From Neoechinorhynchus agilis (lineage: Eukaryota; Animalia; Acanthocephala): a stretch of DNA of 64,000 nucleotides. The notes beneath the pieces are model-generated. The model did not search any database. It saw nothing but the letters and a program-made list of their open reading frames with translations, and was not told where the DNA came from. A program made the translations under genes and the position numbers. Location of the stretch: the NCBI GenBank assembly GCA_051530055.1, contig CM121341.1, positions 6,488,784 through 6,552,783 of the forward strand, given 5' to 3'. How positions within the stretch are numbered: the first letter of the stretch is position 1; each line of letters opens with the position of its first letter. Positions 3,341 to 44,292 of the stretch are shown here, one piece after another.

Positions 3341-4875
3341 ATAGTTTTGATTTTAACCGAACATAGCAACAATTGCATGAAGCGAATTTTAGTTTGAAGA
3401 CTTAACAGGAAAAGACGCAGTACTTCACCGACGATAAAAAAAATTGCATGAAGCAAATTTTAGTATGAAGAATTTACAAAAAAAGACGGCTTACTTCAGC
3501 GACCATAACAAAAATTGTATGAAGCAAATTTTACTTTGAAGACTTAACAGAAAAAGACGGATTACTTCACCGGTCATAACAAAGATTGTATGAAGCAAAT
3601 TTTAGTTTGAAGACTTAACAGAAAAAGACGGCTTACTTCAGCGACCATAACAAAGATTGTATGAAGCAAATTTTAGTTTGAAGAATTTACAAAAAAAGAC
3701 GGCTTACTTCAGCGATCACAACAAAAATTGTACTAGGCAAATTTTAGTTTGAAGATTTTACAAAATGAAGACGAATAACTTCACCGATCATAACAAAGAT
3801 TGTATGAAGCAAATTTTAGTTTGAAGACTTAACAGAAAAAGACGGCTTACTTCAGCGATCATAACAAAAGTTGCATGGAGCAAATTTTAGTTTGAAGACT
3901 TAACAGAAAAAAACGGATTACTTCACCGATCACAACAAAAATTGTATTTGGCAAATTTTAGTTTGAAGATTTTACAACATCAAGACGAATTACTTCACCG
4001 ATCATAACAAAGATTGTATGAAGCAAATTTTAGTTTGAAGACTTAACAGAAAAAGACGGCTTACTTCAGCGATCATAACAAAAGTTGCATGGAGCAAATT
4101 TTAGTTTGAAGACTAAACAGAAAAAAACGGATTACTTCATCGATCACAACAAAAATTGTATTAGGCAAATTTTAGTTTGAAGATTTTACAAAATCAAGAC
4201 GAATTACTTCACCGATCATAACAAAGATTGTATGAAGCAAATTTTAGTTTGAAGAATTTACAAAAAAAGACGGCTTACTTCAGCGATCATAACAAAAGTT
4301 GCATGGAGCAAATTTTAGTTTGAAGACTTAACAAAAAAAGACGGATTACTTCATCGATCACAACAAAAATTGTATTAGGCAAATTTTAGTTTGAAGATTT
4401 TACAAAATCAAGACGAATTACTTCACCGATCATAACAAAGATTGTATGAAGCAAATTTTAGTTTGAATAATTTACAAAAAAAGACGGCTTACTTCAGCGA
4501 TCATAACAAAAGTTGCATGGAGCAAATTTTAGTTTGAAGACTTAACAGAAAAAGACGGATTACTTCATCGATCACAACAAAAATTGTATTAGGCAAATTT
4601 TAGTTTGAAGATTTTACAAAATCAAGACGAATTACTTCACCGATCATAACAAAAATTGTATTAGGCAAATTTTAGTTTGAAGATTTTACAAAATCAAGAC
4701 GAATTACTTCACCGATCATAACAAAGATTGTATGAAGCAAATTTTAGTTTGAATAATTTACAAAAAAAGACGGCTTACTTCAGCGATCATAACAAAAGTT
4801 GCATGGAGCAAATTTTAGTTTGAAGACTTAACAGAAAAAGACGGATTACTTCACCGATCACAACAAAAATTGCAC
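3341..4875. repeat. Satellite of about 25 x 60-bp units with a partial 3-unit (~180 bp) higher-order period
   Basis: Recurrent AAATTTTAGTTTGAAGA...GACG..TACTTCA.CGATCA.AACAAA. Three unit variants cycle in order in the distal half. No ORF of 60 aa or more on either strand. Confidence 0.95.
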
Positions 4876-7140: not shown

Positions 7141-7384
7141 TAATCAATCTGGAAAATTAGTATAAAACGGGGAAAACATCAGCGAATATCGATATTTGGC
7201 CTCACTGCGCTTATAAGATATAACTCACTCTCGCGTTCCCATTAAAATGTCAAAATCAAAAATTAACAAATAATTTTAAACTTTTTTTTACCACCGCACG
7301 CAATCGTAATTCTTCTAAAAGATCAGATATAAAAAATCGATCTGCATTGGTGTTCATTGTAAATTGGGTCTTCGTTCCCATCAT

Positions 7385-8130
7385 TTAAAGGCAACTCTGT
7401 AAATGACAGTAAATGTTTCCATGAGCTACGGAATCGCATAATTTTCTATTGCATTGATAGGACCAATAGGTGTTTGCGGTTTCGTTCTGAAAATGATTCG
7501 TGCCACAAAAGTAATAGTCGTTTGCGTAGTAATATTCAACCGAAAAATAGTGATGCTTTACGTCCGAAATCATCGCAGGATTTCCAATGTGATCGTTCAT
7601 GTCGCTGCCGTAAACAATTTTCCCCACAATTTGCTTTCTATGTTTTAAGCGACGGTTTCCAAACCACGACTAAAAACGCTTCTGACAAAAAATATTTCCG
7701 AAATCTCGACAAACCTTCACATTTTTTGTTGGTATTCGTAATTGAAGTGAAATGTCGTTTTGTGTTTCTTTACTGGGCAATGGATTCGAACGATAAAACT
7801 CCTCCAATATCGCTATCTGCTGCTTCGTATATTTCAATCTCGGATTTTTATGTGAGCGGAAGGAGGTAATGTTCTTATGCCTAAAACAATGTTATTAATA
7901 TTTAAAACGCAAACCTTTTTAATATTTTGGTTACACAACTGTGAGAAACCCTCGTTGTTTCCGCAATCGCGAATTTCGGCAATCCTGCATTTGACAATCT
8001 TATTATTTCTCGTTTCAAAAAATCACATAGAGTTTCCCCTCTGACATACGGCCGTCCCATTTGATTCAGAGTTCCTTCATTCGAAAATAATAATTTCATG
8101 AAAAGAGATCAAATTCTTACCGTAAAACAT
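7385..8130 (-). CDS. Pax-like transcription factor, PAI subdomain + Gly50 homeodomain, no RED subdomain (206 aa); complement(join(7385..7669,7715..7880,7915..8074,8121..8130))
   Basis: Three GT-AG introns (46, 34, 45 nt) give a continuous 621-nt frame: MFYGTLNQMGRPYVRGETL...RVSHSCVTKILKR, then KNPRLKYTKQQIAILEEFY...VKSWFGNRRLKHRKQ. Confidence 0.88.
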
Positions 8131-8190
8131 TTCTATGAAAACGAGTGAGCAAATTATATTTTATAAGAACCGTGAAGCTAAATATCGGTA

Positions 8191-8723
8191 TTCGCTAATG
8201 CTTTCTCCATTTTATACTGATTTTTCACGCTAATGAACATTATCTTTGAATGTAGTAGTTTATTGTTTTTTTGACCATTAAGAAATCCGTTAGAAAAAAG
8301 ATGGACGGTGATTGGCTATTTGCTTGATTAAATGGAGAAACTAATTAAAGTAGGAGGTAATGATTTCGGCGATTAAATACCAATACTTTCAAATGTTATG
8401 TACGATGCAAACTGATTCCTTTATATTATTACATTTCGTGCCTTATCAGTGCTTATCATCCTCGACATGCCACAATCAAACAACTATTAGAAGTGTCCAT
8501 TTGAGACTTTATTTGAGGCTCTAAGAATACCAAAATAGAAAAGGGCTTGTCACTGACGTAGACATCCAGTCTCGGTTACACCTCAAAAACATAAGAACGA
8601 ATTCTATGCGAGGTTACTTTTACTATGTGAGGCAAGCTCAACACGAGTCCCATGAAAAAATATCTTGAAGCATTTGGTTTAAAAGGCTTGACAAGACTCG
8701 TAGTCCTGGACTAAAATCGTGCA
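8191..8723. promoter_or_regulatory. Shared bidirectional Pax/LRR promoter module (homologs upstream of every LRR gene)
   Basis: Conserved blocks across copies: CGCTAATG x2, GATTGGCT (CCAAT, reverse), TGACGT, GAGGT(A/T)ACCTCAACACGAGT, a TATAAAA-like box in most copies, and the TAGTC-nnn-GACTA hairpin just before the ATG. Confidence 0.6.
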
Positions 8724-9923
8724 ATGAATTTCCAACTCTTTGTCTTAAGTTTTCTATTTGGCCTACTGGTTTACGGAGATGAAATACTGTCAGACAAATG
8801 CATTATCCTAGATCTGATTAGAGTGGATTTTTCGATTCAGTGTGGTTCCAGCCATGACAATGCCACTACACTTATTGAAGCTTTAAATACAAAAGTAAAT
8901 GAATCAGTAGTCAGACTTTCCATTACAGGTGTTGGTATCGATAAAATTCCAAATAATCTATCTGACATACTACCAAATGTTACAACCTTAAAGCTTGGAA
9001 ATCCACCTTCAACAAAGTATGAGATATGCACCGGAAAATGTACAAGCAAGTTCTATAACATTGAAAGACTTGAGTTGATAAATATGAATATAAGTGAAAT
9101 GGAATTCACTACACCGCATCCAAATCTCAAAGATTTAAGAATTTTTGGTGGAGAGATGGCCCAACTGGATAAATCATTTGGAACAAAGCTTCCTAACCTT
9201 GAATGGCTCATTATTATCTATAGTAAACTGTCGAGTCTTGGCGTAATCAAAAATATTTGCTCACTTCGGCACTTACTCTTGGATGAAAATAATATAACTT
9301 CACTCGATATTGACAACGCAACTTGTTTCCAAAACCTTATCGGGCTTACTCTGTACGGAAACGCGATTGATTCGGTGACAATCGATCCCAGCGCTGTATC
9401 ACAACTCAAATATCTTCTAATGGATTTCCATGGCGATCTTAATCAATTAATTAAAAGTCTGAACTTACCAGAACTGACAAGCTTGAGTGTAAGAAAGTCG
9501 AATAGTAAGATATTTAATGCTTCTAACCTGGAAAAGCTACCTAAACTGAAAGGTTTGTATTTTGAGGATGGCAAATTGGAAAGAGTGCCGATGGGTAACC
9601 AACAGACTAAGGAAAATATATTGATCCTTAGCCTTGCAAATAACAATATCAATATTGTAAATGAATCGGATTTTGTAGGATGGACAAATCTACGTCAACT
9701 TTATTTAAATCAAAACAACATCAAGAACTTATCATCGAATTCATTCTCGAAGCTGATTAGTTTATGGTTTCTTGATTTAAGCAACAACTTTATGACGGAA
9801 TCATACACCAGTGCTTTCCTAGGTCTACCAAGTTCGACAACAGTGTTCCTTGGCGGGAATCCAGTAACTACTATTCCGCCATCTATTCTTGCACCTCTAA
9901 CGAGTAACAACCAACCGGAATAA
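8724..9923 (+). CDS. Secreted leucine-rich repeat protein, paralog 1 (399 aa, intronless)
   Basis: Hydrophobic signal peptide MNFQLFVLSFLFGLLVYG, Cys-containing N-cap, about a dozen LxxLxLxxN repeats and many N-glycosylation sequons. No TM or GPI-like tail. Confidence 0.92.
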   Translation: MNFQLFVLSFLFGLLVYGDEILSDKCIILDLIRVDFSIQCGSSHDNATTLIEALNTKVNESVVRLSITGVGIDKIPNNLSDILPNVTTLKLGNPPSTKYEICTGKCTSKFYNIERLELINMNISEMEFTTPHPNLKDLRIFGGEMAQLDKSFGTKLPNLEWLIIIYSKLSSLGVIKNICSLRHLLLDENNITSLDIDNATCFQNLIGLTLYGNAIDSVTIDPSAVSQLKYLLMDFHGDLNQLIKSLNLPELTSLSVRKSNSKIFNASNLEKLPKLKGLYFEDGKLERVPMGNQQTKENILILSLANNNINIVNESDFVGWTNLRQLYLNQNNIKNLSSNSFSKLISLWFLDLSNNFMTESYTSAFLGLPSSTTVFLGGNPVTTIPPSILAPLTSNNQPE

Positions 9924-10783
9924 AATCCACAAATGGAAAAAGGTCAATAAATTAAATGACGCTTTACTGTTGAGTTGTGTGCTTAAATCGTTAAATCGCA
10001 TTCCCAAGTTCATCGAATTTCGAAATCGATGAGCATGCAATAATAATTCGATGCCATTTTCATCCGAAACTCCCTTTAAAGTAAAATCATTCCATTCTCG
10101 CCTGGCTCTCCTACTTTTCTCACATTCGATGCAAAGTATCTTTACGGCAATTTATTTCATTTCTATTGCTGGATAAATTCATAGCCGTCAACTATTAGTT
10201 TAAATTAATTTTAGTTGGTATTAGAATTTTGAATAATACTTGGTTCGATTCTACTTCGTGTTCTTAATGTCTTCGACGGAGATCGAAATTGTTAGCATAA
10301 GACATTTTCATGGTAACGAGTGAGCGTATTATATTTTATGAAAGCACTGAGGCTAATTATCGATATTCGCTTATGTTTTTCCCTATTTTATTCTGATTTT
10401 CAACGCTAATGAACATTATGTTTGAATGAAGAAAGATGGACGGTGATTGGCTATTTGTTCGATTAAATGGAGAAATTACTTAAAGTAGGATTTACCAATT
10501 TCAACGATTAAGTACCCGGATATTTTACAACAGAAAAAAGATTGTATATGACGTGGAGATCCAGTCGCTTTAATATCTCGAAAACTTAAGAACGGATTCC
10601 GAGTGAGGTTACCTCAACACGAGTTTCAAGAAAAAAATGTCTTAAAATTTTGCAAGAACGAATATGATGTCAGATAACCTTTACTATGTGAGGTAACTTC
10701 AACACGAGTCCCATGCAAACATTTATAAAAAATTTGGTATAAAACGCGAGACAAGACTCGTAGTCCTTGACTAAAATCGTGCA

Positions 10784-11941
10784 ATGAATCTCCAACTCTT
10801 TGTCTTAAGTTTTCTATTCGGTCTACTAGTTTACGGAGATGAAGGCACGTCAAGCAAATGCATTATCATATATCCGATTGAAGTAAATCTTTCAATTCTG
10901 TGTGGTTTCAGCCATGGCAATGCCACGACACTTATTGAAGCATTAAATTCAAAAGCAAATGAATCAGTAGTCAGTCTTGCAATTGCAGGTGTTGGTATCG
11001 ATGAAATTCCAACCAATCTATCGGACATACTACCAAGCGTAACCACCTTAAAGCTTGGATATCCGCCTTCAATAAAGTTCGGGATATGCACCGGAGAATG
11101 CACAAACAAGTTCTATAACATTGAGAGACTTGAGTTGATAAATATGAATATAAGTGAAATGGAATTCAATAATTCGCTTCCAAATCTCAAATATTTAAAA
11201 ATTGTAGGTGGAGAGATGGCACAACTGGATAAATCATTTGGAATAAAACTTCCTAATCTTAGAAGTCTCTCTATTACTTCTAGTAAACTGTCAAGTCTTG
11301 GAGCAATCAAAAATATTTGTTCACTGTGGTTCTTAAACTTGCGTGAAAATAAGATAACTTCAATTGATATTGACAACACAACTCGTTTCCCATATCTTAT
11401 GGTTCTCGATCTGGACGGAAACGCCATTGAATCTGTTGCAATCGATCACAGCGCCCTACCAGAACTCATAAATCTTAATATTGATTTCCTCGGCGATCTT
11501 AATCAATTAATTACAGGTCTGAACTTACCAGAGCTGACAAGCTTGAGGGTAAGAAAGTCGAATAGTAAGATACTTAATGTTCCTAACCTCGAAAAACTAC
11601 CTAAGCTGAAAGATTTGCATTTTGAGGAAGGCAAATTGGAAAGAGTGCCGATTGGTAACAAACAGACTAAGGAAAATATATCATTTCTTAGCCTTGCAAA
11701 TAACAATATCAGTATTGTAAATGAATCGGATTTTGAAGGATGGACGAATCTACGCCAACTTTATTTAAATCAGAACAACATCAAGAAGTTATCATCGAAT
11801 TCATTCTCGAAGCTGATTAGTTTATGGTTTCTTGATTTAAGAAACAACTCTATTTCGGAATTACACAAAGATGCTTTCCTAGGTCTACCAAGTTCCACAA
11901 CAGTGTTCCTTGACGGAAATCCGATAACTACTATTCAGTAA
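10784..11941 (+). CDS. Secreted LRR protein, paralog 2 (385 aa)
   Basis: Same architecture as paralog 1. An early stop removes the last ~14 residues found in paralogs 1 and 3. Confidence 0.92.
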   Translation: MNLQLFVLSFLFGLLVYGDEGTSSKCIIIYPIEVNLSILCGFSHGNATTLIEALNSKANESVVSLAIAGVGIDEIPTNLSDILPSVTTLKLGYPPSIKFGICTGECTNKFYNIERLELINMNISEMEFNNSLPNLKYLKIVGGEMAQLDKSFGIKLPNLRSLSITSSKLSSLGAIKNICSLWFLNLRENKITSIDIDNTTRFPYLMVLDLDGNAIESVAIDHSALPELINLNIDFLGDLNQLITGLNLPELTSLRVRKSNSKILNVPNLEKLPKLKDLHFEEGKLERVPIGNKQTKENISFLSLANNNISIVNESDFEGWTNLRQLYLNQNNIKKLSSNSFSKLISLWFLDLRNNSISELHKDAFLGLPSSTTVFLDGNPITTIQ

Positions 11942-12849
11942 ACCATTCATGCAGACGTGACGAGTAAAAGCAAACCGGAATAAAATCCACAAATGGAAAA
12001 GATAAATCAATTAAATAACGCCTTACTGTTGAGTTGTGTGCTGAAATCGTTAAATCGCGTTACCAAAGTCATCGAATTTCGAAATCGATGAGCATGCAAA
12101 AACAATACAATGCCATGTTTATTTGAAACTCTTTTTAAAGTGAAATCACTTACTTTATTCTCGTTTTCCTCTCCTAATTTTTTCGCATTCCATGCAAAGT
12201 TTGTTAAATCTTTACAGCCATTCATTTCATTTCTATTGCTGAATAAAATCATAGCATTTTACCATTAGTTTAAATTAATTTTAATTAGTGTTATAATTTT
12301 TGAATTTGGTTCGATTCTACTTCGTGTTCTTAATGTCTTCGACGGAGATCGAAATTGTTAGCATAAGACATTTTCATGGTAACGAGTGAGCGTATTATAT
12401 TTTATGAAAGCACTGAGGCTAATTATCGATATTCGCTTATGTTTTTCCCTATTTTATTCTGATTTTCAACGCTAATGAACATTATGTTTGAATGAAGAAA
12501 GATGGACGGTGATTGGCTATTTGTTCGATTAAATGGAGAAATTACTTAAAGTAGGATTTACCAATTTCAACGATTAAGTACCCGGATATTTTACAACAGA
12601 AAAAAGATTGTATGTGACGTGGAGATCCAGTCGCTTTAATATCTCGAAAACTTAAGAACGGATTCGGAGTGAGGTTACCTCAACACGAGTTTCAAGAAAA
12701 AAATGTCTTAAAATTTTGCAAGAACGAATATGATGTCAGATAACCTTTACTATGTGAGGTAACTTCAACACGAGTCCCATGCAAACATTTATAAAAAATT
12801 TGGTATAAAACGCGAGACAAGACTCGTAGTCCTTGACTAAAATCGTGCA

Positions 12850-14049
12850 ATGAATCTCCAACTCTTTGTCTTAAGTTTTCTATTTGGCCTACTGGTTTAC
12901 GCAGATGAAGGCACGTCAAACAAATGCACTTCTATATATCCGATTGAGGTGGATTTTTCGATTCAGTGTAGTTCCAGCCATGACAATGCCACTACACTTA
13001 TTGAAGCTTTAAATTCGAAAGCAAATGAATCAGTAGTCAGTCTTTCAATTACAGGTGTTGGTATCGATGAAATTCCAACCAATCTACCTGACCTACTACC
13101 AAGCGTAACCACCTTAAAGCTTGGATATCCACCTTCAAAGGAATATGAGATATGCACCGGAGAATGCACAAACAAGTTCTATAACATTGAGAGACTTGAG
13201 TTGATAAATATGAATATATTTGAAATGGAATTCACTACACCGCATCCAAATCTCAAATATTTAACAATAGTTGGTGGAAAGATCGCACAATTGGATAAAT
13301 CATTTGGGACAAAACTTCCTAATCTTAAAAGTCTCTCTATTACTTCTAGTAAACTGTCAAGCCTTGCAGTAATCAAAAAGATATGTTCACTTCGGATCTT
13401 AAACCTGCGTGAAAATAAGATAACTTCACTCGATATTGACAAAGCAACTTGTTTCCAAAACCTCATCGAACTTACTCTGCACGGAAATGCTATTGATTCG
13501 GTCACAATCGATCACGGCGCTCTACTCCAACTCAAATATCTTCTAATGGATTTCCATGGCGATCTGAATCAATTAATCAAAAATTTGAAAATTCCGAGAC
13601 TGAAAATATTGAGTGTAAGAAAAACGAACAGTACGATATTTTATGTTTCGAACCTGGAAAACTTGCCTAAGCTGAAAGGTTTGTATTTTGAGGAAGGCAA
13701 ATTGGAAAGAGTGCCGATTGGTAACAAACAGACTAAGGAAAATATATTGATCCTTAGCCTTGCAAATAACAATATCAATATTGTAAACGAATCGGATTTT
13801 GAAGGATGGACGAATCTTCATCTACTTTATTTAGATCGAAACAACATCAAGAAGTTATCATCGAATTCATTCTCGAAGATGGTCAATTTAAGGGTTCTTG
13901 ATTTAAGAAACAACTCTATTTCGGAATTACACAAAGATGCTTTCCTAGGTCTACCAAGTTCCACAACAGTGTTCCTTGACGGAAATCCGATAACTACTAT
14001 TCCGCCATCTATTCTTGCCAATGTGACGAGTAAAAGCAAACCGGAATAA
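12850..14049 (+). CDS. Secreted LRR protein, paralog 3 (399 aa); tandem unit with paralog 2, period 2066 bp
   Basis: Same architecture. The upstream ~540 bp is near-identical to that of paralog 2. Confidence 0.92.
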   Translation: MNLQLFVLSFLFGLLVYADEGTSNKCTSIYPIEVDFSIQCSSSHDNATTLIEALNSKANESVVSLSITGVGIDEIPTNLPDLLPSVTTLKLGYPPSKEYEICTGECTNKFYNIERLELINMNIFEMEFTTPHPNLKYLTIVGGKIAQLDKSFGTKLPNLKSLSITSSKLSSLAVIKKICSLRILNLRENKITSLDIDKATCFQNLIELTLHGNAIDSVTIDHGALLQLKYLLMDFHGDLNQLIKNLKIPRLKILSVRKTNSTIFYVSNLENLPKLKGLYFEEGKLERVPIGNKQTKENILILSLANNNINIVNESDFEGWTNLHLLYLDRNNIKKLSSNSFSKMVNLRVLDLRNNSISELHKDAFLGLPSSTTVFLDGNPITTIPPSILANVTSKSKPE

Positions 14050-18736: not shown

Positions 18737-19269
18737 AAATGCGTTTCGCGAAATAAACAAGCTTACACACTTGCACTTTCGAGTGACAAAGCAATGAATC
18801 AATGAAAATCGCTTTTGTCTAAGATAAGACTTGATCAAACTTTTTTCCGATGTTGCACTTGTGACTCTTCAAAACGACACAATTTATTGGATATCCGTGT
18901 TTAAAACAAGGTGTTTTTTTATAAAACGGCCATAAAATCGAAATTTAGAAGTTAACTGACATTGCTTTCGATCTAAAAGCCATAAATAATGAAATCGCTT
19001 TCGTTCTGCTTTTATTCAAACGATAGTAATGGATCGAACAGCGGATATTTCACTCATGAACAACCAGTGAACAGGATGTTTTCCGCTGCGAATCAGAATG
19101 GCACTGAGTTTGTGTTCGTGGTTAGTTTGTCACTTAACGTCGCTAAGATCTAATTTGTCGAAATCGCAGAATTTAACGGACTCATCTCACTATGATAGAT
19201 ATTTTTTCCATACACGGCCGTACGGACACACAGTCCACCGATTTCGGTCTGGGAAACGCTGGTCATCGC

Positions 19270-20490
19270 TCAATGCCCCAAGACCGTCCGCTTAAAAGTT
19301 TGTACATCCCTCTGGGTTCTCCGATACCTCCAGGAGGCTAAACTCATGAGCGAGTTTCCTCCTTTCAGCAGTATTTCGTTCCCTTTGATGTGGGTCATTG
19401 GCGGTAACGGATTCGAGCCCGTTGACCCTAACTGGGATCTGGAGCATTAGTCCCCTTGAGCACCTCAGCACTCTACGGAATGTACAAACTTCGCCACTTT
19501 GGCCTGGATTAGTGTTCAATGCCCCAAGACCGTCCGCTTAAAAGTTTGTACATCCCTCTGGGTTCTCCGATACCTCCATGAGGCTAAACTCATGAGTGAG
19601 TTTCCTCCTTTCAGCAGTATTTCGTTCCCTTTGATGTGGGTCATTGGCGGTAACGGATTCGAGCCCGTTGACCCTAACTGGGATCTGGAGCATTAGTCCC
19701 CTTGAGCACCTCAGCACTCTACGGAATGTACAAACTTCGCCACTTTGGCCTGGATTAGCGTTCAATGCCCCAAGACCGTCCGCTTAAAAGTTTGTACATC
19801 CCTCTGGGTTCTCCGATACCTCCAGGAGGCTAAACTCATGAGCGAGTTTCCTCCTTTCAGCAGTATTTCGTTCCCTTTGATGTGGGTCATTGGCGGTAAC
19901 GGATTCGAACCCGTTGACCCTAACTGGGATCTGGAGCATTAGTCCCCTTGAGCACCTCAGCACTCTACGGAATGTACAAACTTCGCCACTTTGGCCTGGA
20001 TTAGCGTTCAATGCCCCAAGACCGTCCGCTTAAAAGTTTGTACATCCCTCTGGGTTCTCCGATACCTCCAGGAGGCTAAACTCATGAGTGAGTTTCCTCC
20101 TTTCAGCAGTATTTCGTTCCCTTTGATGTGGGTCATTGGCGGTAACGGATTCGAACCCGTTGACCCTAACTGGGATCTGGAGCATTAGTCCCCTTGAGCA
20201 CCTCAGCACTCTACGGAATGTACAAACTTCGCCACTTTGGCCTGGATTAGCGTTCAATGCCCCAAGACCGTCCGCTTAAAAGTTTGTACATCCCTCTGGG
20301 TTCTCCGATACCTCCAGGAGGCTAAACTCATGAGTGAGTTTCCTCCTTTCAGCAGTATTTCGTTCCCTTTGATGTGGGTCATTGGCGGTAACGGATTCGA
20401 ACCCGTTGACCCTAACTGGGATCTGGAGCATTAGTCCCCTTGAGCACCTCAGCACTCTACGGAATGTGCAAACTTCGCCACTTTGGCCTG
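19270..20490 (-). repeat. Tandem array of 5 x 246-bp units, each a putative Pol III-type structured RNA gene or SINE-like unit
   Basis: Exact 246-bp period. Minus strand carries an A-box-like TGGCGAAGTTTG, B-box GGTTCGAATCC (units 3-5; GGCTCGAATCC in units 1-2), a TTTT terminator and complementary 5'/3' ends. Confidence 0.9.
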
Positions 20491-21256
20491 GAAAGCTTTC
20501 CCATTATAGCGGTCTTATTAGTGGCTCAGCGGGTAGTCTTTGGATAGATTTTTTTTCCATACACGGCCAAATGGATACACTGTCCACGGATTTCGCGCGG
20601 GGAAGCGCTGGTCTGCGCTCAATCTTGGGGCAAAATTGGTACCAATAAGAAATCATCATTTAAAATTAGGACGAACTACTTGTCACCGAATATTACTATC
20701 TTTCATTAATTTCTTTCAAAGGTGATTAAATTTTATTCCACAAAGGAATCACATTTCGGGGTATTAGTATTTAATCGTCGAAATTACTAAATCCTACTTT
20801 AATTAGTTTCTCAATTTAATCGAGCAAATAGCCAATCAACGTACATCTTTCCTCTATTGGATTTTTAACGGTCCAAAAAGCAACAAACGTACTCATTCAA
20901 TAATAATGCTCATTAATCTGGAAAATTAGTATAAAACGGGGAAAACATCAGCGAATATCGATATTTGGCCTCACTGCGCTTATAAGATATAACTCACTCT
21001 CGCGTTCCCATTAAAATGTCAAAATCAAAAATTCACAAATAACTTTAAACTTTTTTTTCACCACAGCACGCAATCGTAATTCTTCTAAAAGATCAGATAT
21101 AAAAAATCGATCTGCATTGGTGTTCATTGTAAATTGGGTCTTCGTTCCAATCATTTAAAGGCATCTGAATATTCCAATAAGATTCAACGAGAGTTGTGTC
21201 GCTTTTTGCTTGCTTATTGTAGCAACTCTGTAAATCACAGTAAATGCTTCCATGAG

Positions 21257-21963
21257 CTACGGAATCGCCAAATTTCTATTGTACTGATGGGGCCAATAGG
21301 CGTTTGCGGTTTCGTTCTGAAAATGATTCGTGCCACAAAAGTAATAGTCGTTTGCGTGGTAATATTCAGCCGAAAAATAATGATGCTGTACGTCCGAAAT
21401 CTTCGCAGGATTTCCAATGTGATTGTTCATGTCGCTGCCGCAAACAATTTTCCCCACAGTTTGCTTTCTATCTTTAAAGCGACGGTTTCCAAACCACGAC
21501 TAAAAACGCTTCTGACAAACAATATTTCCGAAATCTCGACAAACCTTCACATTTTTTGTTGGTATTTGTAATTGAAGTGAAATGTCGTTTTGTGTTTCTT
21601 TACTGGGCAATGGATTCGAACGATAAAACTCCTCCAATATCGCTATCTGCTGCTTCGTATATTTCAATCTCGGATTTTTATGTGAGCGGAAGGAGGTAAT
21701 GTTCTTATGCCTAAGGCAAAATTATTAATATTTAATTTAAAACGCAAACCTTTTCAATATTTTGGTTACACAACTGTGAGAAACCCTCGTCGTTTCCGCA
21801 ATCGCGAATTTCGGCAATCCTGCATTTGACAATCTTATTATTTCTCGTTTCAAAAAATCACATAAGAGTTTCCTCTGACATACGGCCGTCCCATTTGATT
21901 CAAGTTCCTTCATTCGAAAATAATAATTCCTTGAAAAGAGATCAAATTCTTACCGTAAAACAT
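21257..21963 (-). pseudogene. Pax-like PAI-homeodomain gene, copy 2 (frameshifted in exon 2)
   Basis: Same exon layout as 7385-8130. Three small indels within ~60 bp of exon 2 give an immediate TGA. These could be consensus errors. Confidence 0.7.
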
Positions 21964-22644
21964 TTCTATGAAAACGAGTGAGCAAATTATATTTTATAAG
22001 AACCGTGAAGCTACATATCAGTCGCTAATGCTTTCTCCATTTTATACTGATTTTTCACGCTAATGAACATTATCTTTGAATGTAGTAGTTTATTGTTTTT
22101 TTGACCATTAAGAAATCCATTAGAAAAAAGATGGACGGTGATTGGCTATTTGCTTGATTAAATGGAGAAACTAATTAAAGTAGGAGGTAATGATTTCGGC
22201 GATTGAATACCAATACTTTCAAATGTGATTTACGATGCAAATTGATTCCTTTATATTATTACATTTCGTGCCTTATCAGTGCTTATCATCCTCGACATGC
22301 CACAATCAAACAACTATTAGAAGTGTCCATTGACTTTATTTGAGGCTCTCAGAATACCAAAATAGAAAAGAGCTTGTCACTGACGTAGACACCAGTCTCG
22401 GTTACACCTTGCGAGATAACCTTAACTACGTAAAGTAACCTCAACACAGTCCCAAGCAAACATTTCTAAAAATTTAGTATAAAACGCGAGACAAGACTCG
22501 TAGTCGTCTAAGACTACATTTAGACAATGAATCTCCAACTTTTACGATGTGAGGTAACCTCAACACGAGTCCCAAGTAAACATTTCTAAAAAATTTAGTA
22601 TAAAACGCGAGGCAAGACCCGTAGTCCTCGACTAAAATCGTGCA

Positions 22645-23796
22645 ATGAATATCCTATTCTTTGTCTTAAGTTTTCTATTTGGCCTACTGGTTTACGGAGA
22701 TACAAGACCGTCAGACAAATGCGTTATCTTACATTCGAATAGAGTAAATTTTGCGATTCAGTGTAGTTCCCGCCATGACAATGCCACTACACTTATTGAA
22801 GCTTTAAACTCGAAAGCAAATGAATCAGTAGTCAGTCTTTCAATTGCAGGTGTTGGTATCGATGAAATTCCAAATAATCTATCTGACCTACTACCAAATG
22901 TTACCACCTTAAAGCTTAAAAATGCACCATCAAAGGAATATGAGATATGCACGAATATTTTCAAGAATATTGAGGTACTTGAGTTGATAAATATGAATAT
23001 AAGTGAAATGAAATTTACTACACCGCATCCAAATCTCATAGAATTAACAATAGTAGGTGGGGAGATGACAAAACTGGATAAATCATTTGGAACAAACCTT
23101 CCTAATCTTGAAAGTCTCTCTATTACCTCCAGTAAACTGTCAAGTCTTGGAGCAATCAAAAAGATATGTTCACTTCGGATCTTAAACCTGCGTGAAAATA
23201 AGATAACTTCACTCGATATTGACAACGCGACTCGTTTCCCATATCTTATGGTTCTCGATCTGGACGGAAACGCCATTGAATCTGTTGCAATCGATCACAG
23301 CGCCCTACCAGAACTCATAAATCTTTATATTGATTTCCACGGCGATCTTAATCAATTAATTACAGGTCTGAACTTACCAGAGCTAAAAGAATTGATGGTG
23401 AGAAAGTCGAATAGTAAGATACTTAATGTTCCTAACCTGGAAAACCTGCCTAAGCTGAAAGATTTGCATTTTGAGGAAGGCAAATTGGAAAGCGTGCCGA
23501 TTGGTAACAAACAGACTAATGCTACGATATCATTTCTTAGCCTTGCAAATAACAATATCAGTATTGTAAATGAATCGGATTTTGAAGGATGGACGAATCT
23601 ACGTATACTTCATTTAAATCAAAACAACATCAAGAAGTTATCATCGAATTCATTTTCGAAGCTAATTAATTTAAGATTTCTTTATTTAAGAAACAACTCT
23701 ATTTCGGAATCATACAACGACACTTTCCTAGGTCTACCAAGTCCCACATCAGTGTTCCTTGGCGGAAATCCGATAACTTCTGGACGCGGCGAGTAA
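22645..23796 (+). CDS. Secreted LRR protein, paralog 4 (383 aa)
   Basis: Signal peptide + LRRs; a mosaic of segments shared with paralogs 2, 3, 5 and 7. Confidence 0.92.
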   Translation: MNILFFVLSFLFGLLVYGDTRPSDKCVILHSNRVNFAIQCSSRHDNATTLIEALNSKANESVVSLSIAGVGIDEIPNNLSDLLPNVTTLKLKNAPSKEYEICTNIFKNIEVLELINMNISEMKFTTPHPNLIELTIVGGEMTKLDKSFGTNLPNLESLSITSSKLSSLGAIKKICSLRILNLRENKITSLDIDNATRFPYLMVLDLDGNAIESVAIDHSALPELINLYIDFHGDLNQLITGLNLPELKELMVRKSNSKILNVPNLENLPKLKDLHFEEGKLESVPIGNKQTNATISFLSLANNNISIVNESDFEGWTNLRILHLNQNNIKKLSSNSFSKLINLRFLYLRNNSISESYNDTFLGLPSPTSVFLGGNPITSGRGE

Positions 23797-24313
23797 AAAC
23801 CAACCGGAATGAAATCCACAAATGGAAAAAGGTCAATAAATTAAATGACGCTTTACTTTTGAGTTGTGTGCTTAAATCGTGTTACCAAAGTCATCGAATT
23901 TTTAAATCAGTGAGAATGCAATAATAATTCGATGCCATTTTCATCCGAAACTCCTTTTAAAGTAAAATCACTCCATTCTCGCCTGGCTCTCCTACTTTTC
24001 TCACATTCGATGCAAAGTATCTTTACGGCAATTTATTTCATTTCCAAATGCACGAAGAGGAGGACCCATGTCCCCGTTTGGGTGCTCGTAAACACTCGAG
24101 TTCTGATTGGGTCTTCAAATTTAATTGTCTGAGCGCCGATAAAAACACATTGATTTTTTGATTGAGATGCAAAGATTCGATTTGCGTTCACGCTTTTTTC
24201 TCGGCCCATTCGCGCACAAAGTCGAGACGCGATTTAAAAACTTTTGGGAACAAAATTCAAAACTTTTTTTCGATTCCAATGAAAGAGTTGGAGATGTTTT
24301 GAGCAAGAATACA

Positions 24314-26228
24314 ATGGTATCAAAGTTTGGCTCTTGTAGGCACGAAATTATTAATTATGATCATCAAAAGTATAGAATCGATAATTGTGACGTCACTCGA
24401 ACGCTTGAAAATTACGTGCCGATAGTCGTGTTCAGTGACGTCACCATAAGTCTCGCGAATCTGGAAGAACGCTGCATCGATAGAAAAAATCGATGGCAAA
24501 TAAAGCACGAAAATGCGCGAGGACGGCATGATAACGCGATCGATGTGTCGGAGGTTGGTTCAAACGAGCGAGAATCCTGACGATGCGGATCTATCGATTC
24601 CTATTGAACGTCGAATGATTTCCGATCGGTCGGAGTGCTTGTGCTATGCAAGTAAACAAGAAGTTTTGAAGAAGACTGGATGTGATATTGGTAATCGGTA
24701 TCTTTTTTTGTGAATGTTTATCCTCGCTTACAAATCTTACAATAGGTCCTCAACGCCCACAAATCGGGCTGCTTTATACATTAAATCACAAAAGGAAATT
24801 CCTCCAGAATTAAGCTTTAGAGCTAAGCGAGCTCATTATAACTACGCAGAATCGTAAGTATCGTGGCTGTACCGTTTTAATTTTGTTTTCTTCTTAAAAA
24901 GAGAAAGCTATTTGTTGCCAGACACAGAAGATTTGAACAGATCAAATTCGATGGTCCGCGATAGTTTTAGACGAAGGCTAGTGTCTCAGCGGCATAATTT
25001 AGCCAACCGACATTTAGAATTCGAAATGGTGATAGAATCCAAAAAACCTCGTTAAACTATCCAAATATTTTAATGTAATTTTTTGCCTTTATTCCCCGTT
25101 TGAAGAGATTTTTTGGAATATGATTATCACCTTTAAACAAAAACTAGTACTGGGAATTGTTGAGATCTTTTTCTCTCACTCTGAACGTCGGTTCTATAAA
25201 AGAAGTGTCATTAACTGGGACCGCAATGAATCTCATGGTTACTCGGATCCAATGGTTCATTTCAATGCTTTACATTTCGATCACTGACTACGTTAGACTA
25301 ATCCGAAACGACACAACAATTGGTCGAATAGAGCTTTCAGGCTCAAAAAACAAGCTGTCATTAATTCTGAAAGTGTTGACTGCTCAACTCCTAGGCATTT
25401 TGTTGATTGTGTTTCTCACGTCTGGTAAGTTGTTTTACACGGTTTCCAAAGTAGAAAAAATGACATATTTGAAGCCAATAAAGACAATGCTGAGATGATT
25501 GTCTATGATAAATCACAAAACGGACAAAGCACCGAGGGTTCCCCGAAGGAACAGCAGGAAACGCAAGTTCAATTGAATACGTCTTTTATAAATTACGCCA
25601 GATCGAGATACGGTTCCGTAGATCTCATCAATCCACGCATTCTCTATCGCTTCTTTTTAAAGTTTCATACATTGAAGCCAGTTCTGATACCAAATCCGTC
25701 TGCAAATCAGTCTCATCGGTTCGATGGCGGCGGTGGTGGCCGTTTACTCGATCGACCTATCTGATTCAGGCAGATCCAACCAATATAATAAAGGTTTGAT
25801 ATAATGTTTAATGAGAAGATCCTCTATGTGTTTGAATAGAGCAACTTGGAACCTGGATTTTGTTGGTGTTTTGTGGGATCCCACGGATCCGTGGATATTT
25901 CGTGGGTACACAATATAACGATCACCGGTTGGACGTATAAACATTGCCGTCGATACGAAACGAAAACTCCGGATTCGGCACCTAGGCAAATGTCGCTATT
26001 TGTAAGTGTACAAGTAATTCCCTTTAACTCCATTATCTACTGTTTTAGAACCAAAGACTCAACCAGAGCATTGGAGATTTCGAATTCCTTTACGAAGATT
26101 ATAAGCAATCGTTCAGTCTAAAGAATACGGTTTACACTGATCAAATGCAAATCAAGGTCCTTTCTAATTGGGGGAATCAGTATTTCACCTGCTTATACAA
26201 AGTCAAGTTCGTGGGTCCGAACATGTGA
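24314..26228 (+). CDS. SUN-domain nuclear envelope protein (multi-exon; start codon uncertain)
   Basis: Spliced exons give INYARSRY, PGFCWCFVGSHG, DSAPRQMSLF and SNWGNQYFTCLYKVKFVG, matching the SUN domain. Short GT-AG introns. Confidence 0.82.
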
Positions 26229-27189: not shown

Positions 27190-28620
27190 CCCACACTTCC
27201 GCCCCCGGTTTGCCGAAATTCAAAAATCCCTTCCCTACCGTAATCTATCCCAATATTCGTAGCGTCCTTCCTAAACTGGATGAAATTTCATCTACCTCAA
27301 AAGGCCACGTAGTCATCTTAACAGAAACGTGGCTTACTCCCTTCAACAGCGATTCAGTCATCCTTCCCGGGAGTCTCTTCCCTTCCATACGGACCGCGAG
27401 GACCGTCCAGGGCGGGGTCTCAATTTACGTACGACAATCACTACCATAATCTTTATCTCTTATAAGCTCTCTACAAAACCCGATCTAGAATTCATCGCAG
27501 TCCATTTCATAGCTCCTCTGAGAAACGGCCTTAGAGAATCCACAATTGCTGGCGTCTATCGCCCTCCTGCCTCTCGTCCTGAGTCCTCTTTGCGCCAACT
27601 TGATTCCATGTTGCTCCGCAAATTCATACCATTTCTTAATTGCAGGGCACTTCAATAAACTGTTTTTTCTCTCACCTTTCTCTGAGTTTCGTCAACTAAT
27701 TGGACGCACAAAGTGTTGACCAATAGCGGCGCCTACTCATCCGCATCAAAACTACGCCCCTCCGCAAACTCTTAGCACTCTTCGGACCTCATCACTTCCT
27801 CCACCTCACCTCAGCGTTTAAAATCAATTCGTTTACCCGTCTGGGATAAAGAAGATCATAACATTTACAATTGTATTAAATTGTTCAATTCTATGATTCA
27901 CACCATCCACTATGGCAACACAAATTACTCTTCCTACAAAGGCAAGCGTCTAAGGCCCATCGCAATCAATCTCCAGACTCTCCCCGTTTAGAAATAGCTC
28001 TAATTAACAAAATACATATCGCCCGCAAAAACTTCCTTGCCTCTAAAATTCGATCAGGACATGGTGGCGGGCCGTCAAGAACTCTCTCTTGGTCTACGCT
28101 ACCCGGATCCCTTCCCTAATTTGTCTTCAATTGAATTAAAACAGGTTCTAGATTTCATTAATCTGATCCTCTACCCTGACTCAATTTACAATCACTGCTC
28201 CACATCAGTCACCACACAATCTTTCACGCCTACACCTGAAACTTTTGTCAACTCGCCGATACTCTCCTTAGTTTCATCATATCAAGTCCTACAACATCTC
28301 AAGAAATTACCTGGAAATTCGTCCTCTCAATCCGAAATCCCAAACTGGACTCTTCGCAGCATCATGCCCGAGCTCATCGAACATCTTACCCACATCATAA
28401 ACCACAGCGTTTTATATGGCATCTACTCCTCATGCCTGAAAACTGCTAAAGTTATACTTGCTCCAAAAAAGGGCATCCTATTTCGGCCGAATCATTCCGC
28501 CCAATTTCCATTCTGCCCGCTCTTTCAAAAATCATCGAAAAATGTTTGAAATCTCACCTTCTTTCACTTCACGAAAAGTTATTGCCCTACAATTTGGCTT
28601 CCGACCCAGATTTTCTGCAA
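27190..28620 (+). mobile_element. CR1/L2-group LINE fragment (APE endonuclease + RT N-terminus)
   Basis: NIRSVLPKLDEI, ILTETWL, GGVSIYV, KTAKVI...KKG and QFGFRP. Truncated where Pax copy 3 begins. Confidence 0.85.
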
Positions 28621-29322
28621 TCGCCAAAGTTTCTATTGTACTGATGGGGCCAATAGGCGTTTGCGGTTTCGTTCTGAAAATGATTCGTGCCACAAAAGTA
28701 ATAGTCGTTTGCGTGGTAATATTCAGCCGAAAAATAATGATGCTGTACGTCCGAAATCTTCGCAGGATTTCCAATGTGATTGTTCATGTCGCTGCCGCAA
28801 ACAATTTTCCCCACAGTTTGCTTTCTATCTTTAAAGCGACGGTTTCCAAACCACGACTAAAAACGCTTCTGACAAACAATATTTCCGAAATCTCAACAAA
28901 CCTTCACATTTTTTGTTGGTATTTGTAATTGAAGTGAAATGTCGTTTTGTGTTTCTTTACTGGGCAATGGATTCGAACGATAAAACTCCTCCAATATCGC
29001 TATCTGCTGCTTCGTATATTTCAATCTCGGATTTTTATGTGAGCGGAAGGAGGTAATGTTCTTATGCCTAAGGCAAAATTATTAATATTTAATTTAAAAC
29101 GCAAACCTTTTCAATATTTTGGTTACACAACTGTGAGAAACCCTCGTTGTTTCCGCAATTGCGAATTTCGGCAATCCTGCATTTGACAATCTTATTATTT
29201 CTCGTTTCAAAAAATCACATAGAGTTTCCCCTCTGACATACGGCCGTCCCATTTGATTCAGAGTTCCTTCATTCGAAATTAATAATTTCATGAAAAGAGA
29301 TCAAATTCTTACCATAAGACAT
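28587..29322 (-). CDS. Pax-like PAI-homeodomain gene, copy 3 (apparently open; C-terminal end taken from antisense LINE DNA)
   Basis: Exon 1 is ATGTCTTATG (MSYG). Splice sites and frame are conserved, PAI and WFGNRR are intact, and the tail ends NRNFGDCRKSGSEAKL. Confidence 0.8.
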
Positions 29323-30009
29323 TTCTATGAAAACGAGTGAGCAAATTATATTTTATAAGAACCGTGAAGCTACATATCGGTATTCGCTAATGCTTTCTCC
29401 ATTTTATACTGATTTTTCACGCTAATGAACATTATCTTTGAATGTAGTAGTTTATTGTTTTTTTGACCATTAAGAAATCCATTAGAAAAAAGATGGACGG
29501 TGATTGGCTATTTGCTCGATTAAATGGAGAAACTAATTAAAGTAGGAGGTAATGATTTCGGCGATTAAATACCAATACTTTCAAATGTGATTTACGATGC
29601 AAATTGATTCCTTTATATTATTACATTTCGTGCCTTATCAGTGCTTATCATCCTCGACATGCCACAATCAAACAACTATTAGAAGTGTCCATTTGAGACT
29701 TTATTTGAGGCTCTAAGAATACCAAAATAGAAAAGGGCTTGTCACTGACGTAGACATCCAGTCTCGGTTACACCTTGCGAGATAACCTTAACTACGTAAA
29801 GTAACCTCAACACGAGTCCCAAGCAAACATTTCTAAAAAATTTAGTATAAAACGCGAGACAAGACTCGTAGTCGTCGACTAAAACTGGGCAATGAATCTC
29901 CAACTTTTACGATGTGAGGTAACCTCAACACGAGTCCCAAGCAAACATTTCTAAAAAATTTAGTATAAAACGCGAGGCAAGACCCGTAGTCCTCGACTAA
30001 AATCGTGCA

Positions 30010-30960
30010 ATGAATATCCTATTCTTTGTCTTAAGTTTTCTATTTGGCCTACTGGTTTACGGAGATACAAGACCGTCAGACAAATGCGTTATCTTACATT
30101 CGAATAGAGTAAATTTTGCGATTCAGTGTAGTTCCAGCCATGACAATGCCACTACACTTATTGAAGTTTTAAATTCGAAAGCAAATGGACCAGCAACCAG
30201 TCTTTCAATTGCAGGTGTTGGTATCGATGAGATTCCAAATAATCTATCTGACCTACTACCAAATGTTACCAACTTAAGGCTTGAAAATGCACCATCAAAG
30301 GAATATGCGATGTGCACGAATATTTTCAAGAATATTCAGAGACTTGAGTTGATAAATATGAATATATTTGAAATGGAATTCATGCAGCCGCATCCAAATC
30401 TCATAGAATTAACAATAGTAGGTGGGGAGATGACAAAACTGGATAAATCATTTGGGACAAAACTTCCTAATCTTACAATTCTCTCTATTACTTCTGATTT
30501 CCTCGGCGATCTAAATCAATTAATCCAAAATCTGAACTTACCAGAGCTGACAAGCTTGACTGTCAGAAAAACGAACAGTAAGATACTTAATGTTCCTAAC
30601 CTGGAAAACCTGCCTAAGCTGAAATATTTGTATTTTGAGGATGGCAAATTGGAAAGCGTGCCGATTGGTAACAAACAGACTAATGCTACGATATCATTTC
30701 TTAGCCTTGCAAATAACAATATCAGTATTGTAAATGAATCGGATTTTGAAGGATGGACGAATCTACGTGAACTTTATTTAAATCAAAACAACATCAAGAA
30801 GTTATCATCGAATTCATTTTCGAAGCTGATTAGTTTATGGTTTCTAGATTTAAGAAACAACTCTATTTCGGAATCATACAACGACACTTTCCTGGGTCTA
30901 CGAAGTCCCATATTAGTGCTCGTTGGCGGAAATCCGATAACTTCTGGACGCGGCGAGTAA
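30010..30960 (+). CDS. Secreted LRR protein, paralog 5 (316 aa; in-frame loss of ~3 LRR modules)
   Basis: 67 aa shorter than paralog 4. The junction LSITS-DFLGD fuses two beta-strands. Confidence 0.9.
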   Translation: MNILFFVLSFLFGLLVYGDTRPSDKCVILHSNRVNFAIQCSSSHDNATTLIEVLNSKANGPATSLSIAGVGIDEIPNNLSDLLPNVTNLRLENAPSKEYAMCTNIFKNIQRLELINMNIFEMEFMQPHPNLIELTIVGGEMTKLDKSFGTKLPNLTILSITSDFLGDLNQLIQNLNLPELTSLTVRKTNSKILNVPNLENLPKLKYLYFEDGKLESVPIGNKQTNATISFLSLANNNISIVNESDFEGWTNLRELYLNQNNIKKLSSNSFSKLISLWFLDLRNNSISESYNDTFLGLRSPILVLVGGNPITSGRGE

Positions 30961-31478
30961 AAACCAACCGGAATGAAATCCACAAATGGAAAAAGGTCAA
31001 TAAATTAAATGACGCTTTACTTTTGAGTTGTGTGCTTAAATCGTCTTACCAAAGTCATCGAATTTTTAAATCAGTGAGAATGCAATAATAATTCGATGCC
31101 ATTTTCATCCGAAACTCCTTTTAAAGTAAAATCACTCCATTCTCGCCTGGCTCTCCTACTTTTCTCACATTCGATGCAAAGTATCTTTACGGCAATTTAT
31201 TTCATTTCCAAATGCACGAAGAGGAGGACCCATGTCCCCGTTTGGGTGCTCGTAAACACTCGAGTTCTGATTGGGTCTTCAAATTTAATTGTCTGAGCGC
31301 CGATAAAAACACATTGATTTTTTGATTGAGATGCAAAGATTCGATTTGCGTTCACGCTTTTTTCTCGGCCCATTCGCGCACAAAGTCGAGACGCGATTTA
31401 AAAACTTTTGGGAACAAAATTCAAAACTTTTTTTTCGATTCCAATGAAAGAGTTGGAGATGTTTTGAGCAAGAATACA

Positions 31479-36508: not shown

Positions 36509-36561
36509 AGCTGATCGCTTTACATTTAATAAATTATAACGTTCTAATTAATGTGCAGTTG

Positions 36562-37029: not shown

Positions 37030-37065
37030 CTAAAAACGAGAATTCCGAAAAGGCACAATATTAAT

Positions 37066-44240: not shown

Positions 44241-44292
44241 GTTCGAAAATAATAATTTCATGAAAAGAGATCAAATTCTTACCATAAGACAT
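44241..44292 (-). pseudogene. Remnant of Pax-like exon 1 and intron 1 (copy 4)
   Basis: Matches 29271-29322 (MSYG exon and GTAAG donor); homology ends abruptly before exon 2. Confidence 0.75.

Follow-up and report, generated by a model that had tools for sequence, protein, structure and literature searches.

A spliced Pax-like gene lies head-to-head with an LRR gene

We analyzed a 64,000-nucleotide stretch of the genome of Neoechinorhynchus agilis, an acanthocephalan of the fish gut (CM121341.1:6488784-6552783, assembly GCA_051530055.1). Within this stretch, hereafter called the window, a small Pax-like gene that we term mini-Pax is repeated beside members of a leucine-rich repeat (LRR) gene family. 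One of the repeated genes, copy A, diverges from the neighboring LRR1 gene, and both are transcribed in all four N. agilis RNA runs that were used. Copy A is organized as follows.

7385-8130, minus strand: coding region (RNA joints in four runs; splice sites and open reading frame; Pfam PAX and Homeodomain)
8130-8121, minus strand: exon 1, with the ATG at 8130
8074-7915, minus strand: exon 2, encoding the PAI subdomain
7880-7715, minus strand: exon 3, encoding the linker and homeodomain positions 1-46
7669-7385, minus strand: exon 4, running from homeodomain position 47 through position 60 and the tail to the stop codon
8131-8504, minus strand: 5' untranslated region (UTR), with an optional 46-nt intron at 8341-8386 (RNA contigs and alignment)

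Contigs assembled from the four RNA runs were mapped to positions 7200-12100. In every run, three GT..AG introns have been removed from the coding region (7670-7714, 45 nt; 7881-7914, 34 nt; 8075-8120, 46 nt), and the 5'UTR intron is spliced out in three of the four (8340>8387 joint in runs X1, X3 and X4). A 1015-nt contig from run X2 spans 7366-8504 in four pieces with no more than two mismatches per piece, and it therefore derives from copy A rather than from a paralogue. The spliced open reading frame (ORF) has four coding exons and 206 codons for amino acids, begins MFYG-TLNQMGRPYVRG and includes WFGNRR. Between its ATG and that of LRR1 at 8724 lie 593 nt, the genes being arranged head-to-head. 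Copy A is a genuine gene that is expressed and encodes a compact protein of two modules, although its product is absent from the protein collection despite full spliced RNA support. Loose contig ends at 8475 and 8043 were considered as an additional splice or leader and rejected, because they map to 32806-32853 beside a paralogous promoter copy and reflect cross-mapping.

The intron inside the homeobox is in phase 0 and separates AAG from TCG, that is, K46 from S47 (RNA joint 7669>7715). A paper on LEUTX describes a phase-0 intron at homeodomain codons 46/47 as the canonical PRD-like splice site (PMC6258689); this intron is also present in even-skipped genes and so is not exclusive to the PRD class (PMC3359188). 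Another copy A intron sits exactly at the junction between PAI and the linker.

The protein joins a PAI subdomain to a Gly50 homeodomain

The PAI exon of copy A matches Pfam PAX with an E value of 3.4e-9 (score 37.1 bits, cutoff 22) over profile positions 2-57 of 125, and the homeodomain exon matches Pfam Homeodomain with an E value of 9.9e-9. The annotated paralogue P0074, which is the product of copy C, covers positions 1-57 of the 57-position Homeodomain profile without a gap (3.2e-15). The last 94 residues of the copy A ORF pieces have no Pfam match. The RED subdomain, the second helix-turn-helix (HTH) of paired domains (positions ~77-128), is absent. The Pfam match stops at profile position 57-66, and because it covers only 2-57 in copy A, with nine residues (HKNITSFRS) between KILKR and the homeodomain, the protein has no RED half. 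Nothing in this linker is similar to the octapeptide/EH1 motif of the Pax3/7 type, nor is there room for one.

Aligned to Prd, Pax5 and Pax8, the paired-domain part of copy A extends from Gly3 to Arg56. The Arg44/His47 pair that marks paired domains of the non-Pax6 type is retained in it, as is the PAI recognition helix (SHSCVTKIL for SHGCVSKIL), and it is altered at several contact positions of the beta-turn (N14R, R16E and P17T) and at G48S. The homeodomain has the full 60 residues and keeps R5, L16, W48, F49, N51 and R53. Its oddities are Ser47 and Gly50, and position 50 is Gly (GGA), rather than the paired-type Ser, in all four copies described below. The three-residue insert that TALE homeodomains carry between helices 1 and 2 is missing, such that alignment with Exd requires a three-residue gap in the query, and Homeobox_KN scores below its cutoff on P0074 (19.3 bits against 24).

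These data can be set beside an earlier note on this DNA. The RNA joints confirm the splicing, length and expression of the 206-residue gene that it had predicted, and coordinates return the 593-bp spacing that it gave between the two start codons. The Pfam match and the short spacer agree with its PAI half and missing RED; the linker, put there at about 10 residues, is indeed short and measures nine. Its reading of Gly50 in the homeodomain was also correct.

An AlphaFold model of P0074, built on a 41-sequence alignment, has PAI residues 5-58 as a hairpin plus three helices and homeodomain residues 68-123 as three helices, both at a predicted local distance difference test score (pLDDT) above 90. 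Linker residues 55-60 are of low confidence, and the tail (129-193) is disordered, with pLDDT below 50. Foldseek matched the model to tandem-HTH proteins, including the DUX4 double homeodomain, POU proteins and the Pax5 and Pax6 paired domains, and to single homeodomains at a template modeling score of ~0.9. The tail of copy A is disordered, rich in aromatic residues and ~80 residues long.

Judged from these features, the mini-Pax protein is predicted to bind DNA. Its two HTH modules appear to be tethered too tightly for independent action, and a single composite site would therefore be expected, as is read by the PAI subdomain and homeodomain of Drosophila Paired. Because homeodomain positions 47 and 50 carry small residues, the PAI recognition helix may supply much of the specificity. 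Drosophila Prd without RED is largely sufficient for Paired function and rescues embryonic functions (PMC4345280).

Similar proteins without RED occur in bdelloid rotifers

When the PAI subdomain was searched against PDB sequences (E≤10), only Pax5, Pax8, Prd and Pax6 were returned. Tc1/mariner transposases gave no match in Pfam or, at the same limit, in PDB, and generic HTH families stayed below their cutoffs. A phmmer search of 1.84 billion representatives produced 360 matches at E≤0.001, the sole close one being P0074 of the same family. Paired-domain motifs are present in 147 of the 149 best non-self matches, and none of these resembles a Tc1/mariner transposase. P0074 used as a query against a set of 5.8 billion proteins recovered only itself. 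On its PAI subdomain the protein is a member of the Pax family, as found by Pfam, by the restriction of PDB matches to Pax proteins, by the modelled fold and by the recognition helix. The check proposed by the earlier note, on whether PAI groups with Tc1/mariner, was thereby answered in favor of Pax paired domains. Identity of PAI to any canonical Pax is just ~35-42%. The top PAI identity, 44%, was to P0118 (L010 4744-4908, JGI metagenome 3300006000), which was set aside as an uninformative, degenerate eukaryotic ORF with in-frame TGA codons, next to a hAT transposase remnant; no homeodomain lies downstream of this PAI-like ORF in L010.

The homeodomain scored best, within the comparison set, against bdelloid rotifer proteins of group 2 (39.3 to 32 bits). 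Scores were 28-31 bits for rotifer group 1, 27-28 for Trichinella and at most 27 for canonical Pax3/7; among solved structures, DUX4, Eve and Exd/PBX reached ~35 bits and Pax6 25.8 bits. The bdelloid proteins come from Adineta ricciae, A. vaga, A. steineri, Rotaria spp. and Didymodactylos and form two paralogue groups of 267-309 amino acids. In each, Pfam PAX is matched from position 1 to ~75 of 125 and is followed by a Ser50 homeodomain, with no RED. P0074 aligns to rotifer P0272 collinearly across both domains, with a single 44-residue gap in the linker (E 9e-19), and tblastn shows that an exon of the A. vaga mini-Pax gene begins at homeodomain position 47, so that the 46/47 intron is held in common. 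In a search with a mini-Pax profile, canonical gsb-n/Pax3/7 proteins ranked next after the rotifer-type proteins; affinity to Pax3/7 as opposed to Pax4/6 was judged only by this ranking and the Arg44/His47 signature. The PAI subdomain was placed in trees of 110 paired-domain sequences and, later, of 102; the branch that leads to the query is saturated (length 10). At first the query grouped, at 96% support, with the full set of rotifer mini-Pax proteins, and it shifted once other long branches were dropped.

Trichinella products labeled "gooseberry-neuro/Pax-3" (P0213, P0264-P0266) have a paired domain that stops at profile position ~72, followed by a homeodomain. This truncation could be an independent loss of RED or an effect of annotation.

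The layout has counterparts in bdelloid rotifers and Trichinella. We found no publication describing these RED-less proteins of PAI and homeodomain, and Pax, homeobox and LRR genes go unmentioned in the N. agilis genome paper. The losses listed in a review of "molecular tinkering" among PRD-class genes are those of the homeodomain, half the homeodomain, PAI or the whole paired domain, together with PAI-only proteins without a homeodomain, and a natural PAI plus homeodomain protein without RED is not among the combinations in that list (PMC4901127). A homeobox survey of A. vaga reported "up to eight Pax4/6" genes, counted by their homeodomains alone (PMC5322547).

Four Pax bodies lie beside LRR genes

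Using tblastn and blastn, we located four Pax bodies within ~100 kb, each head-to-head with an LRR gene; three of them belong to the window and the fourth lies upstream of it. Remnants of the Pax 5' end were also found. Copy D is given in coordinates of L002, a fetched locus.

Window 7385-8130, minus strand: copy A, partner LRR1; intact, 206 amino acids
Window 21222-21963, minus strand: copy B, partner LRR-B; frameshifted pseudogene as assembled (alignment and translation)
Window 28587-29322, minus strand: copy C, partner LRR-C; intact, 197 amino acids from the upstream ATG
L002 18056-18766, 19.9 kb upstream of the window: copy D, partner LRR gene ACOME3_001471; intact
Window 10279-10516, minus strand: Pax first-exon and 5'UTR remnant upstream of LRR2; keeps ATGTCTTATG, with splice donor and gene body lost (blastn, 70.6% identity to 8105-8381)
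Window 12345-12582, minus strand: Pax first-exon remnant upstream of LRR3 (blastn and sequence)
Window 44238-44560, minus strand: remnant with Pax 5'UTR, ATG (44292) and intron 1, breaking off precisely where intron 1 stops (92-94% blastn identity to the sequence from 8076 on)

In copy B, both the PAI exon and exon 3 have suffered indels and the frame reads MFYGT followed by a stop, and for these reasons we regard it as a pseudogene as assembled. Just past its 3' end, at 20747-21020, lies an inverted partial copy (~80% identity) of the Pax 5'UTR exon. Copy C is annotated as ACOME3_001489 (P0074, 193 amino acids) from an internal Met, without the first coding exon. The fetched loci contain no gene model at copies B and D, and the protein collection contains no protein of copies A, B or D. 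Copies A and D encode the same amino acids throughout the PAI subdomain and over homeodomain positions 1-53. At the C-terminus, copy C differs from the other copies and copy D is longer. Remnants of the 5'UTR exon stand upstream of LRR2, LRR3 and LRR-E, at two sites in L002 and beside a paralogue on CM121343.1; three of them keep the ATG.

To count linkage we took 15 full-length LRR paralogues: the six of the window, plus nine from six further loci, some of them on two other chromosomes. A Pax body accompanies four of them (one frameshifted), and 11 have none. No Pax sequence occurs within 10 kb of the dispersed paralogues in L003, L005, L006 and L007. In a tree of LRR DNA, the Pax-linked genes fall into two clades, each of which also holds Pax-less members.

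The recurrence of the divergent pair that the earlier note placed at 21257-23796 and 28587-30960 holds for both pairs, with the correction that the Pax gene of the first is frameshifted copy B. Its remnants near 44241-46059 and upstream of LRR2 and LRR3 are those listed above. The self-contained module of regulator and effector that it proposed is not borne out: it had itself named a majority of unpartnered LRR paralogues as evidence to the contrary, and the Pax body is found at just 4 of 15.

The LRR family and the shared promoter

The LRR genes and fragments of the window are listed here.

8724-9923, plus strand: LRR1, single exon, 399 amino acids (ORF; Pfam LRR_8, 2.9e-24; RNA depth)
10784-11941, plus strand: LRR2, 385 amino acids; no Pax body
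12850-14049, plus strand: LRR3, 399 amino acids; no Pax body
22645-23796, plus strand: LRR-B, 383 amino acids (annotated ACOME3_001486, 365-residue product); partner of copy B
30010-30960, plus strand: LRR-C, 316 amino acids, with an internal deletion relative to LRR-B (383 amino acids); partner of copy C
32854-33913, plus strand: LRR promoter copy with a truncated, rearranged LRR fragment
44905-46059, plus strand: LRR-E, 384 amino acids, sister of LRR1; no Pax body

In the LRR1 protein, a hydrophobic, signal-like N-terminal peptide is accompanied by LRR_8 repeats, numerous N-glycosylation motifs and cysteines that are conserved. Annotation of N. agilis includes 14 members of the family, and the next database match reaches an E value of only 1e-14. 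From these sequences, the LRR proteins are predicted to be secreted, and the family appears species-restricted, mosaic and fast-evolving.

Pax contigs stop at 8504 and LRR1 contigs start at 8583, leaving at most ~80 bp between the two sets of contigs. The features of the intervening promoter are as follows.

8505-8723: shared divergent promoter region (alignment of 15 LRR upstream regions)
8546-8573: conserved promoter block CTTGTCACTGACGTAGACATCCAGTCTC, between the Pax contig end and the LRR1 contig start
Within 8505-8723: conserved ACCTCAACACGAGTC block
Within 8505-8723: GTCACTGACGT block
About 40 nt before the LRR1 ATG: TATA-like GGTTTAAAAGG

Roughly 240 nt upstream of the LRR ATG are conserved in all 15 paralogues, with or without a Pax neighbor. 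Because this promoter is equally conserved in both situations, any regulator of the LRR genes would act in trans and linkage would be unneeded. Across the paralogues the 8546-8573 block reads CTTGTCACTGACGTRGACATCCAGTCTC and stands farther upstream than ACCTCAACACGAGTC. The conserved LRR promoter block contains GTCAC(T/G)G adjoining TGACGT. Its core is like GTCACGG, which we take to be the PAI core or half-site of the Prd crystal DNA; we treat this likeness as a lead only.

Divergence differs between the Pax and LRR portions of the units

Divergence was measured segment by segment from unit A to the other three units.

Homeodomain exon: 0-0.6%
PAI exon: 1.3% (4.4% for pseudogene copy B)
5'UTR exons and 5'UTR intron: 0-2.6%, including tract 8387-8504 at no more than ~2.6%
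Introns 1 and 3: 0-4%
Intron 2 (34 nt): 12%
Pax tail: 8-12%
Intergenic and LRR promoter DNA: 13-18%
LRR coding DNA: 7-23%, in a mosaic pattern

When unit A is compared with the units of the intact copies C and D, the Pax tract from the 5'UTR to the homeodomain differs by 0-2.6%, and the coding DNA of the partner LRR genes by 7-23%. This mismatch points to gene conversion or recombination rather than to strict co-divergence. Similarity in the UTR and in introns 1 and 3 is close to that in the exons, and the conservation of the Pax tract is therefore better read as gene conversion or recent recombination than as evidence of selection. The ratio of nonsynonymous to synonymous rates (dN/dS) is 0.27-0.46 for the DNA-binding part of Pax, on 4-11 substitutions per comparison, ~1 for the Pax tail, and 0.44-1.46 for pairs of LRR genes.

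Recombination appears to have left further traces in the array. LRR-B differs from the partner of copy D in L002 by 1.7% over the first 300 nt and by 10-20% thereafter. Copies B and C lie within a segmental duplication of 7.36-kb period (21263-25615 against 28619-32780, 96-98% identity) that spans the Pax gene, the LRR gene and ~2.3 kb of downstream sequence. The proximal LRR promoter also carries a 125-bp tandem duplication with a pseudo-ATG at 22538-22660, at 29903-30025 and at ~17320-17442 of L002. This duplication is confined to units B, C and D, the three units with an MNILFF-type signal peptide, and is probably a scar of unequal recombination.

Discussion

The reading that we favor, with a probability of about 0.63, is that these genes are strongly derived, RED-less "mini-Pax" genes of Syndermata (rotifers and acanthocephalans), situated in an amplifying, recombining LRR array and homogenized by gene conversion. 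A Pax lineage of Syndermata without RED would have led to a strongly derived Gly50 member in N. agilis. Segmental duplication and unequal recombination would have enlarged and reshuffled the LRR array; some LRR units (four so far, one now frameshifted) would take the Pax gene with them, and others would have had it deleted, leaving the first-exon remnants. Among the surviving Pax copies, gene conversion may hold the tract from the 5'UTR to the homeodomain near-identical. The structure of the gene, its expression and domain content, the map of copies and the pattern of divergence are observations; conversion and an origin of the linkage by hitchhiking, like DNA binding, are what we infer from them. 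For the linkage, a passive ride within the recombining LRR array is the simpler account, because the Pax body has been lost at most paralogues, the promoter is equal in those that are unlinked, and the two halves of the units diverge differently.

Several points weigh against this interpretation. The PAI tree is saturated and unstable, and descent from the rotifer lineage therefore leans mainly on similarity of the homeodomain and on the common layout. Canonical DNA-contact positions of PAI have changed, so that this subdomain may bind weakly or differently. The DNA-binding part has accumulated 3-5 nonsynonymous against 2-4 synonymous changes, too few for a significant dN/dS, and selection at the protein level is not demonstrated. 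Finally, the survival of three unbroken copies whose DNA-binding parts are the same would also be compatible with a role in dosage or regulation.

In a different model, the Gly50 mini-Pax is a dedicated and possibly self-regulating activator or repressor of the LRR genes, co-amplified with its targets and acting through the promoter block. The head-to-head arrangement with so little DNA between the transcript contigs, the four pairs, the transcription of both genes in every run and the block common to all LRR promoters speak for this model, and the first-exon remnants at other LRR genes imply that the linkage is old. We nevertheless consider it unlikely, as 11 of 15 LRR paralogues lack a Pax body, one of the four bodies is broken, the promoter is conserved to the same degree with or without a Pax neighbor, and the Pax and LRR parts have different divergence histories. 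Still less probable, in our estimate, is its boldest form, a newly evolved, self-regulating master switch of the LRR family whose tightly tethered PAI and homeodomain would read GTCAC...TGACGT, with changes at homeodomain position 50 marking a radiation of factors in this genome, each of them wired to its own parasite-specific gene battery. We judge just as improbable the opposite proposal, that the copies are functionless, decaying passengers, transcribed and spliced merely because they share an active bidirectional promoter. One copy is frameshifted, the gene body is gone from five or more units, the tail evolves at a dN/dS of ~1 with variable C-termini, the PAI branch is extremely long with altered contact residues, and only one of the four copies is annotated, all of which would suit decay. 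Three copies, however, have kept open frames and every splice site, copies A and D are protein-identical over PAI and homeodomain positions 1-53, both domains are modelled with confident folds, and L16, W48, F49, N51 and R53 of the homeodomain and the SHxCVxKIL helix of PAI are intact.

The remaining alternatives concern the origin of the protein. It could be a chimera in which a PAI exon was shuffled onto a non-Pax homeobox, PBC/TALE-like or other, rather than a Pax protein that lost RED. The homeodomain scores ~35 bits against Exd/PBX, Eve and DUX4, equal to any PRD structure and above Pax6; SNPxPSxE and WFGN(K/R)R are common to PBC proteins; and an intron coincides exactly with the boundary between PAI and the linker. 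We find this quite doubtful, given that the TALE insert is absent and Homeobox_KN is below cutoff, that the top homeodomain matches are RED-less rotifer Pax proteins collinear over both domains, and that the 46/47 phase-0 intron is a PRD-like site (PMC6258689), even if eve has it too (PMC3359188). A PAI-like module taken from a Tc1/mariner-type transposase, with the unit being a mobile element, would account for the repetition, and paired domains are distantly related to Tc1/mariner DNA-binding domains. We give this origin almost no weight: PAX lies above and generic HTH families below their cutoffs, the PDB matches at E≤10 include no transposase, and nearly all of the best phmmer matches (147 of 149) have Pax motifs. 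Moreover, the protein has no DDE domain and ends in a disordered tail, and the copies are confined to the LRR cluster, where duplication boundaries vary.

The closest known counterparts of mini-Pax are the bdelloid proteins (A. ricciae CAF0802879.1, here P0196; A. vaga I4U23_008880, here P0257; unnamed in databases), which share its layout and come from the same larger group, Syndermata. The paired-domain linker ETGSxxPG is preserved in them, as are Ser50 and a spacer 40-55 residues long, and their PAI is ~70-80% canonical. In the N. agilis protein, by contrast, the paired domain ends at position 56, the spacer has nine residues, the homeodomain has Gly50 and Ser47, and the gene has been amplified beside LRR genes. 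Pax3/7 proteins such as Paired and Gooseberry likewise combine PAI with a full homeodomain and have Arg44/His47 of the non-Pax6 type, but the N. agilis protein has neither RED nor octapeptide, carries Gly50 where they have Ser50, and differs further in its lineage-specific tail and in the extreme shortness of its spacer. The NPAX proteins of C. elegans also have the PAI half only (PMC4901127, PMC4448998). Unlike the N. agilis protein they lack a homeodomain, and there is no evidence of common descent. With PBC/TALE proteins (PBX, Extradenticle) the N. agilis homeodomain shares Gly50, WFGN(K/R)R, SNPxPSxE and a similar PDB score, but it has neither the three-residue loop extension nor a PBC domain, and its Homeobox_KN score is below cutoff. 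As units, the N. agilis pairs resemble duplicated gene pairs with bidirectional promoters in that divergent transcription from a short region has been copied by segmental duplication; they differ in that one partner is a predicted transcription factor that has been lost from most copies.

The minimal form of PAI plus homeodomain used in Drosophila experiments exists in nature, in a conservative version in rotifers and a very fast-evolving one in an acanthocephalan. With its short tether, Gly50, multiple copies and expression, the N. agilis mini-Pax offers a compact natural system for DNA recognition by tethered HTH modules, and it is a marker of gene-family turnover in a strongly reduced parasite. 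The LRR family, predicted to be secreted and seen to be mosaic, species-restricted and variable in dN/dS (0.44-1.46), is itself a candidate host-interface family.

Other features of the window

The window has no match in Rfam. A tandem array at 19267-20492 consists of about five 246-bp units of 98-99% identity and likewise has no Rfam match at gathering thresholds. At 3353-4874 there is a long tandem repeat of short period, with self-matches at offsets of ~71 and 214 bp (84-93% identity). A 559-bp dispersed repeat occurs at 27377-27935 and 52918-53476 with 99.6% identity, and the region from 26 to 30 kb of the window has a strong negative GC skew. A further family of dispersed repeats, with 82-98% identity, lies at 35905-38387, 48630-50314 and 56864-57699 and may be a transposable element.

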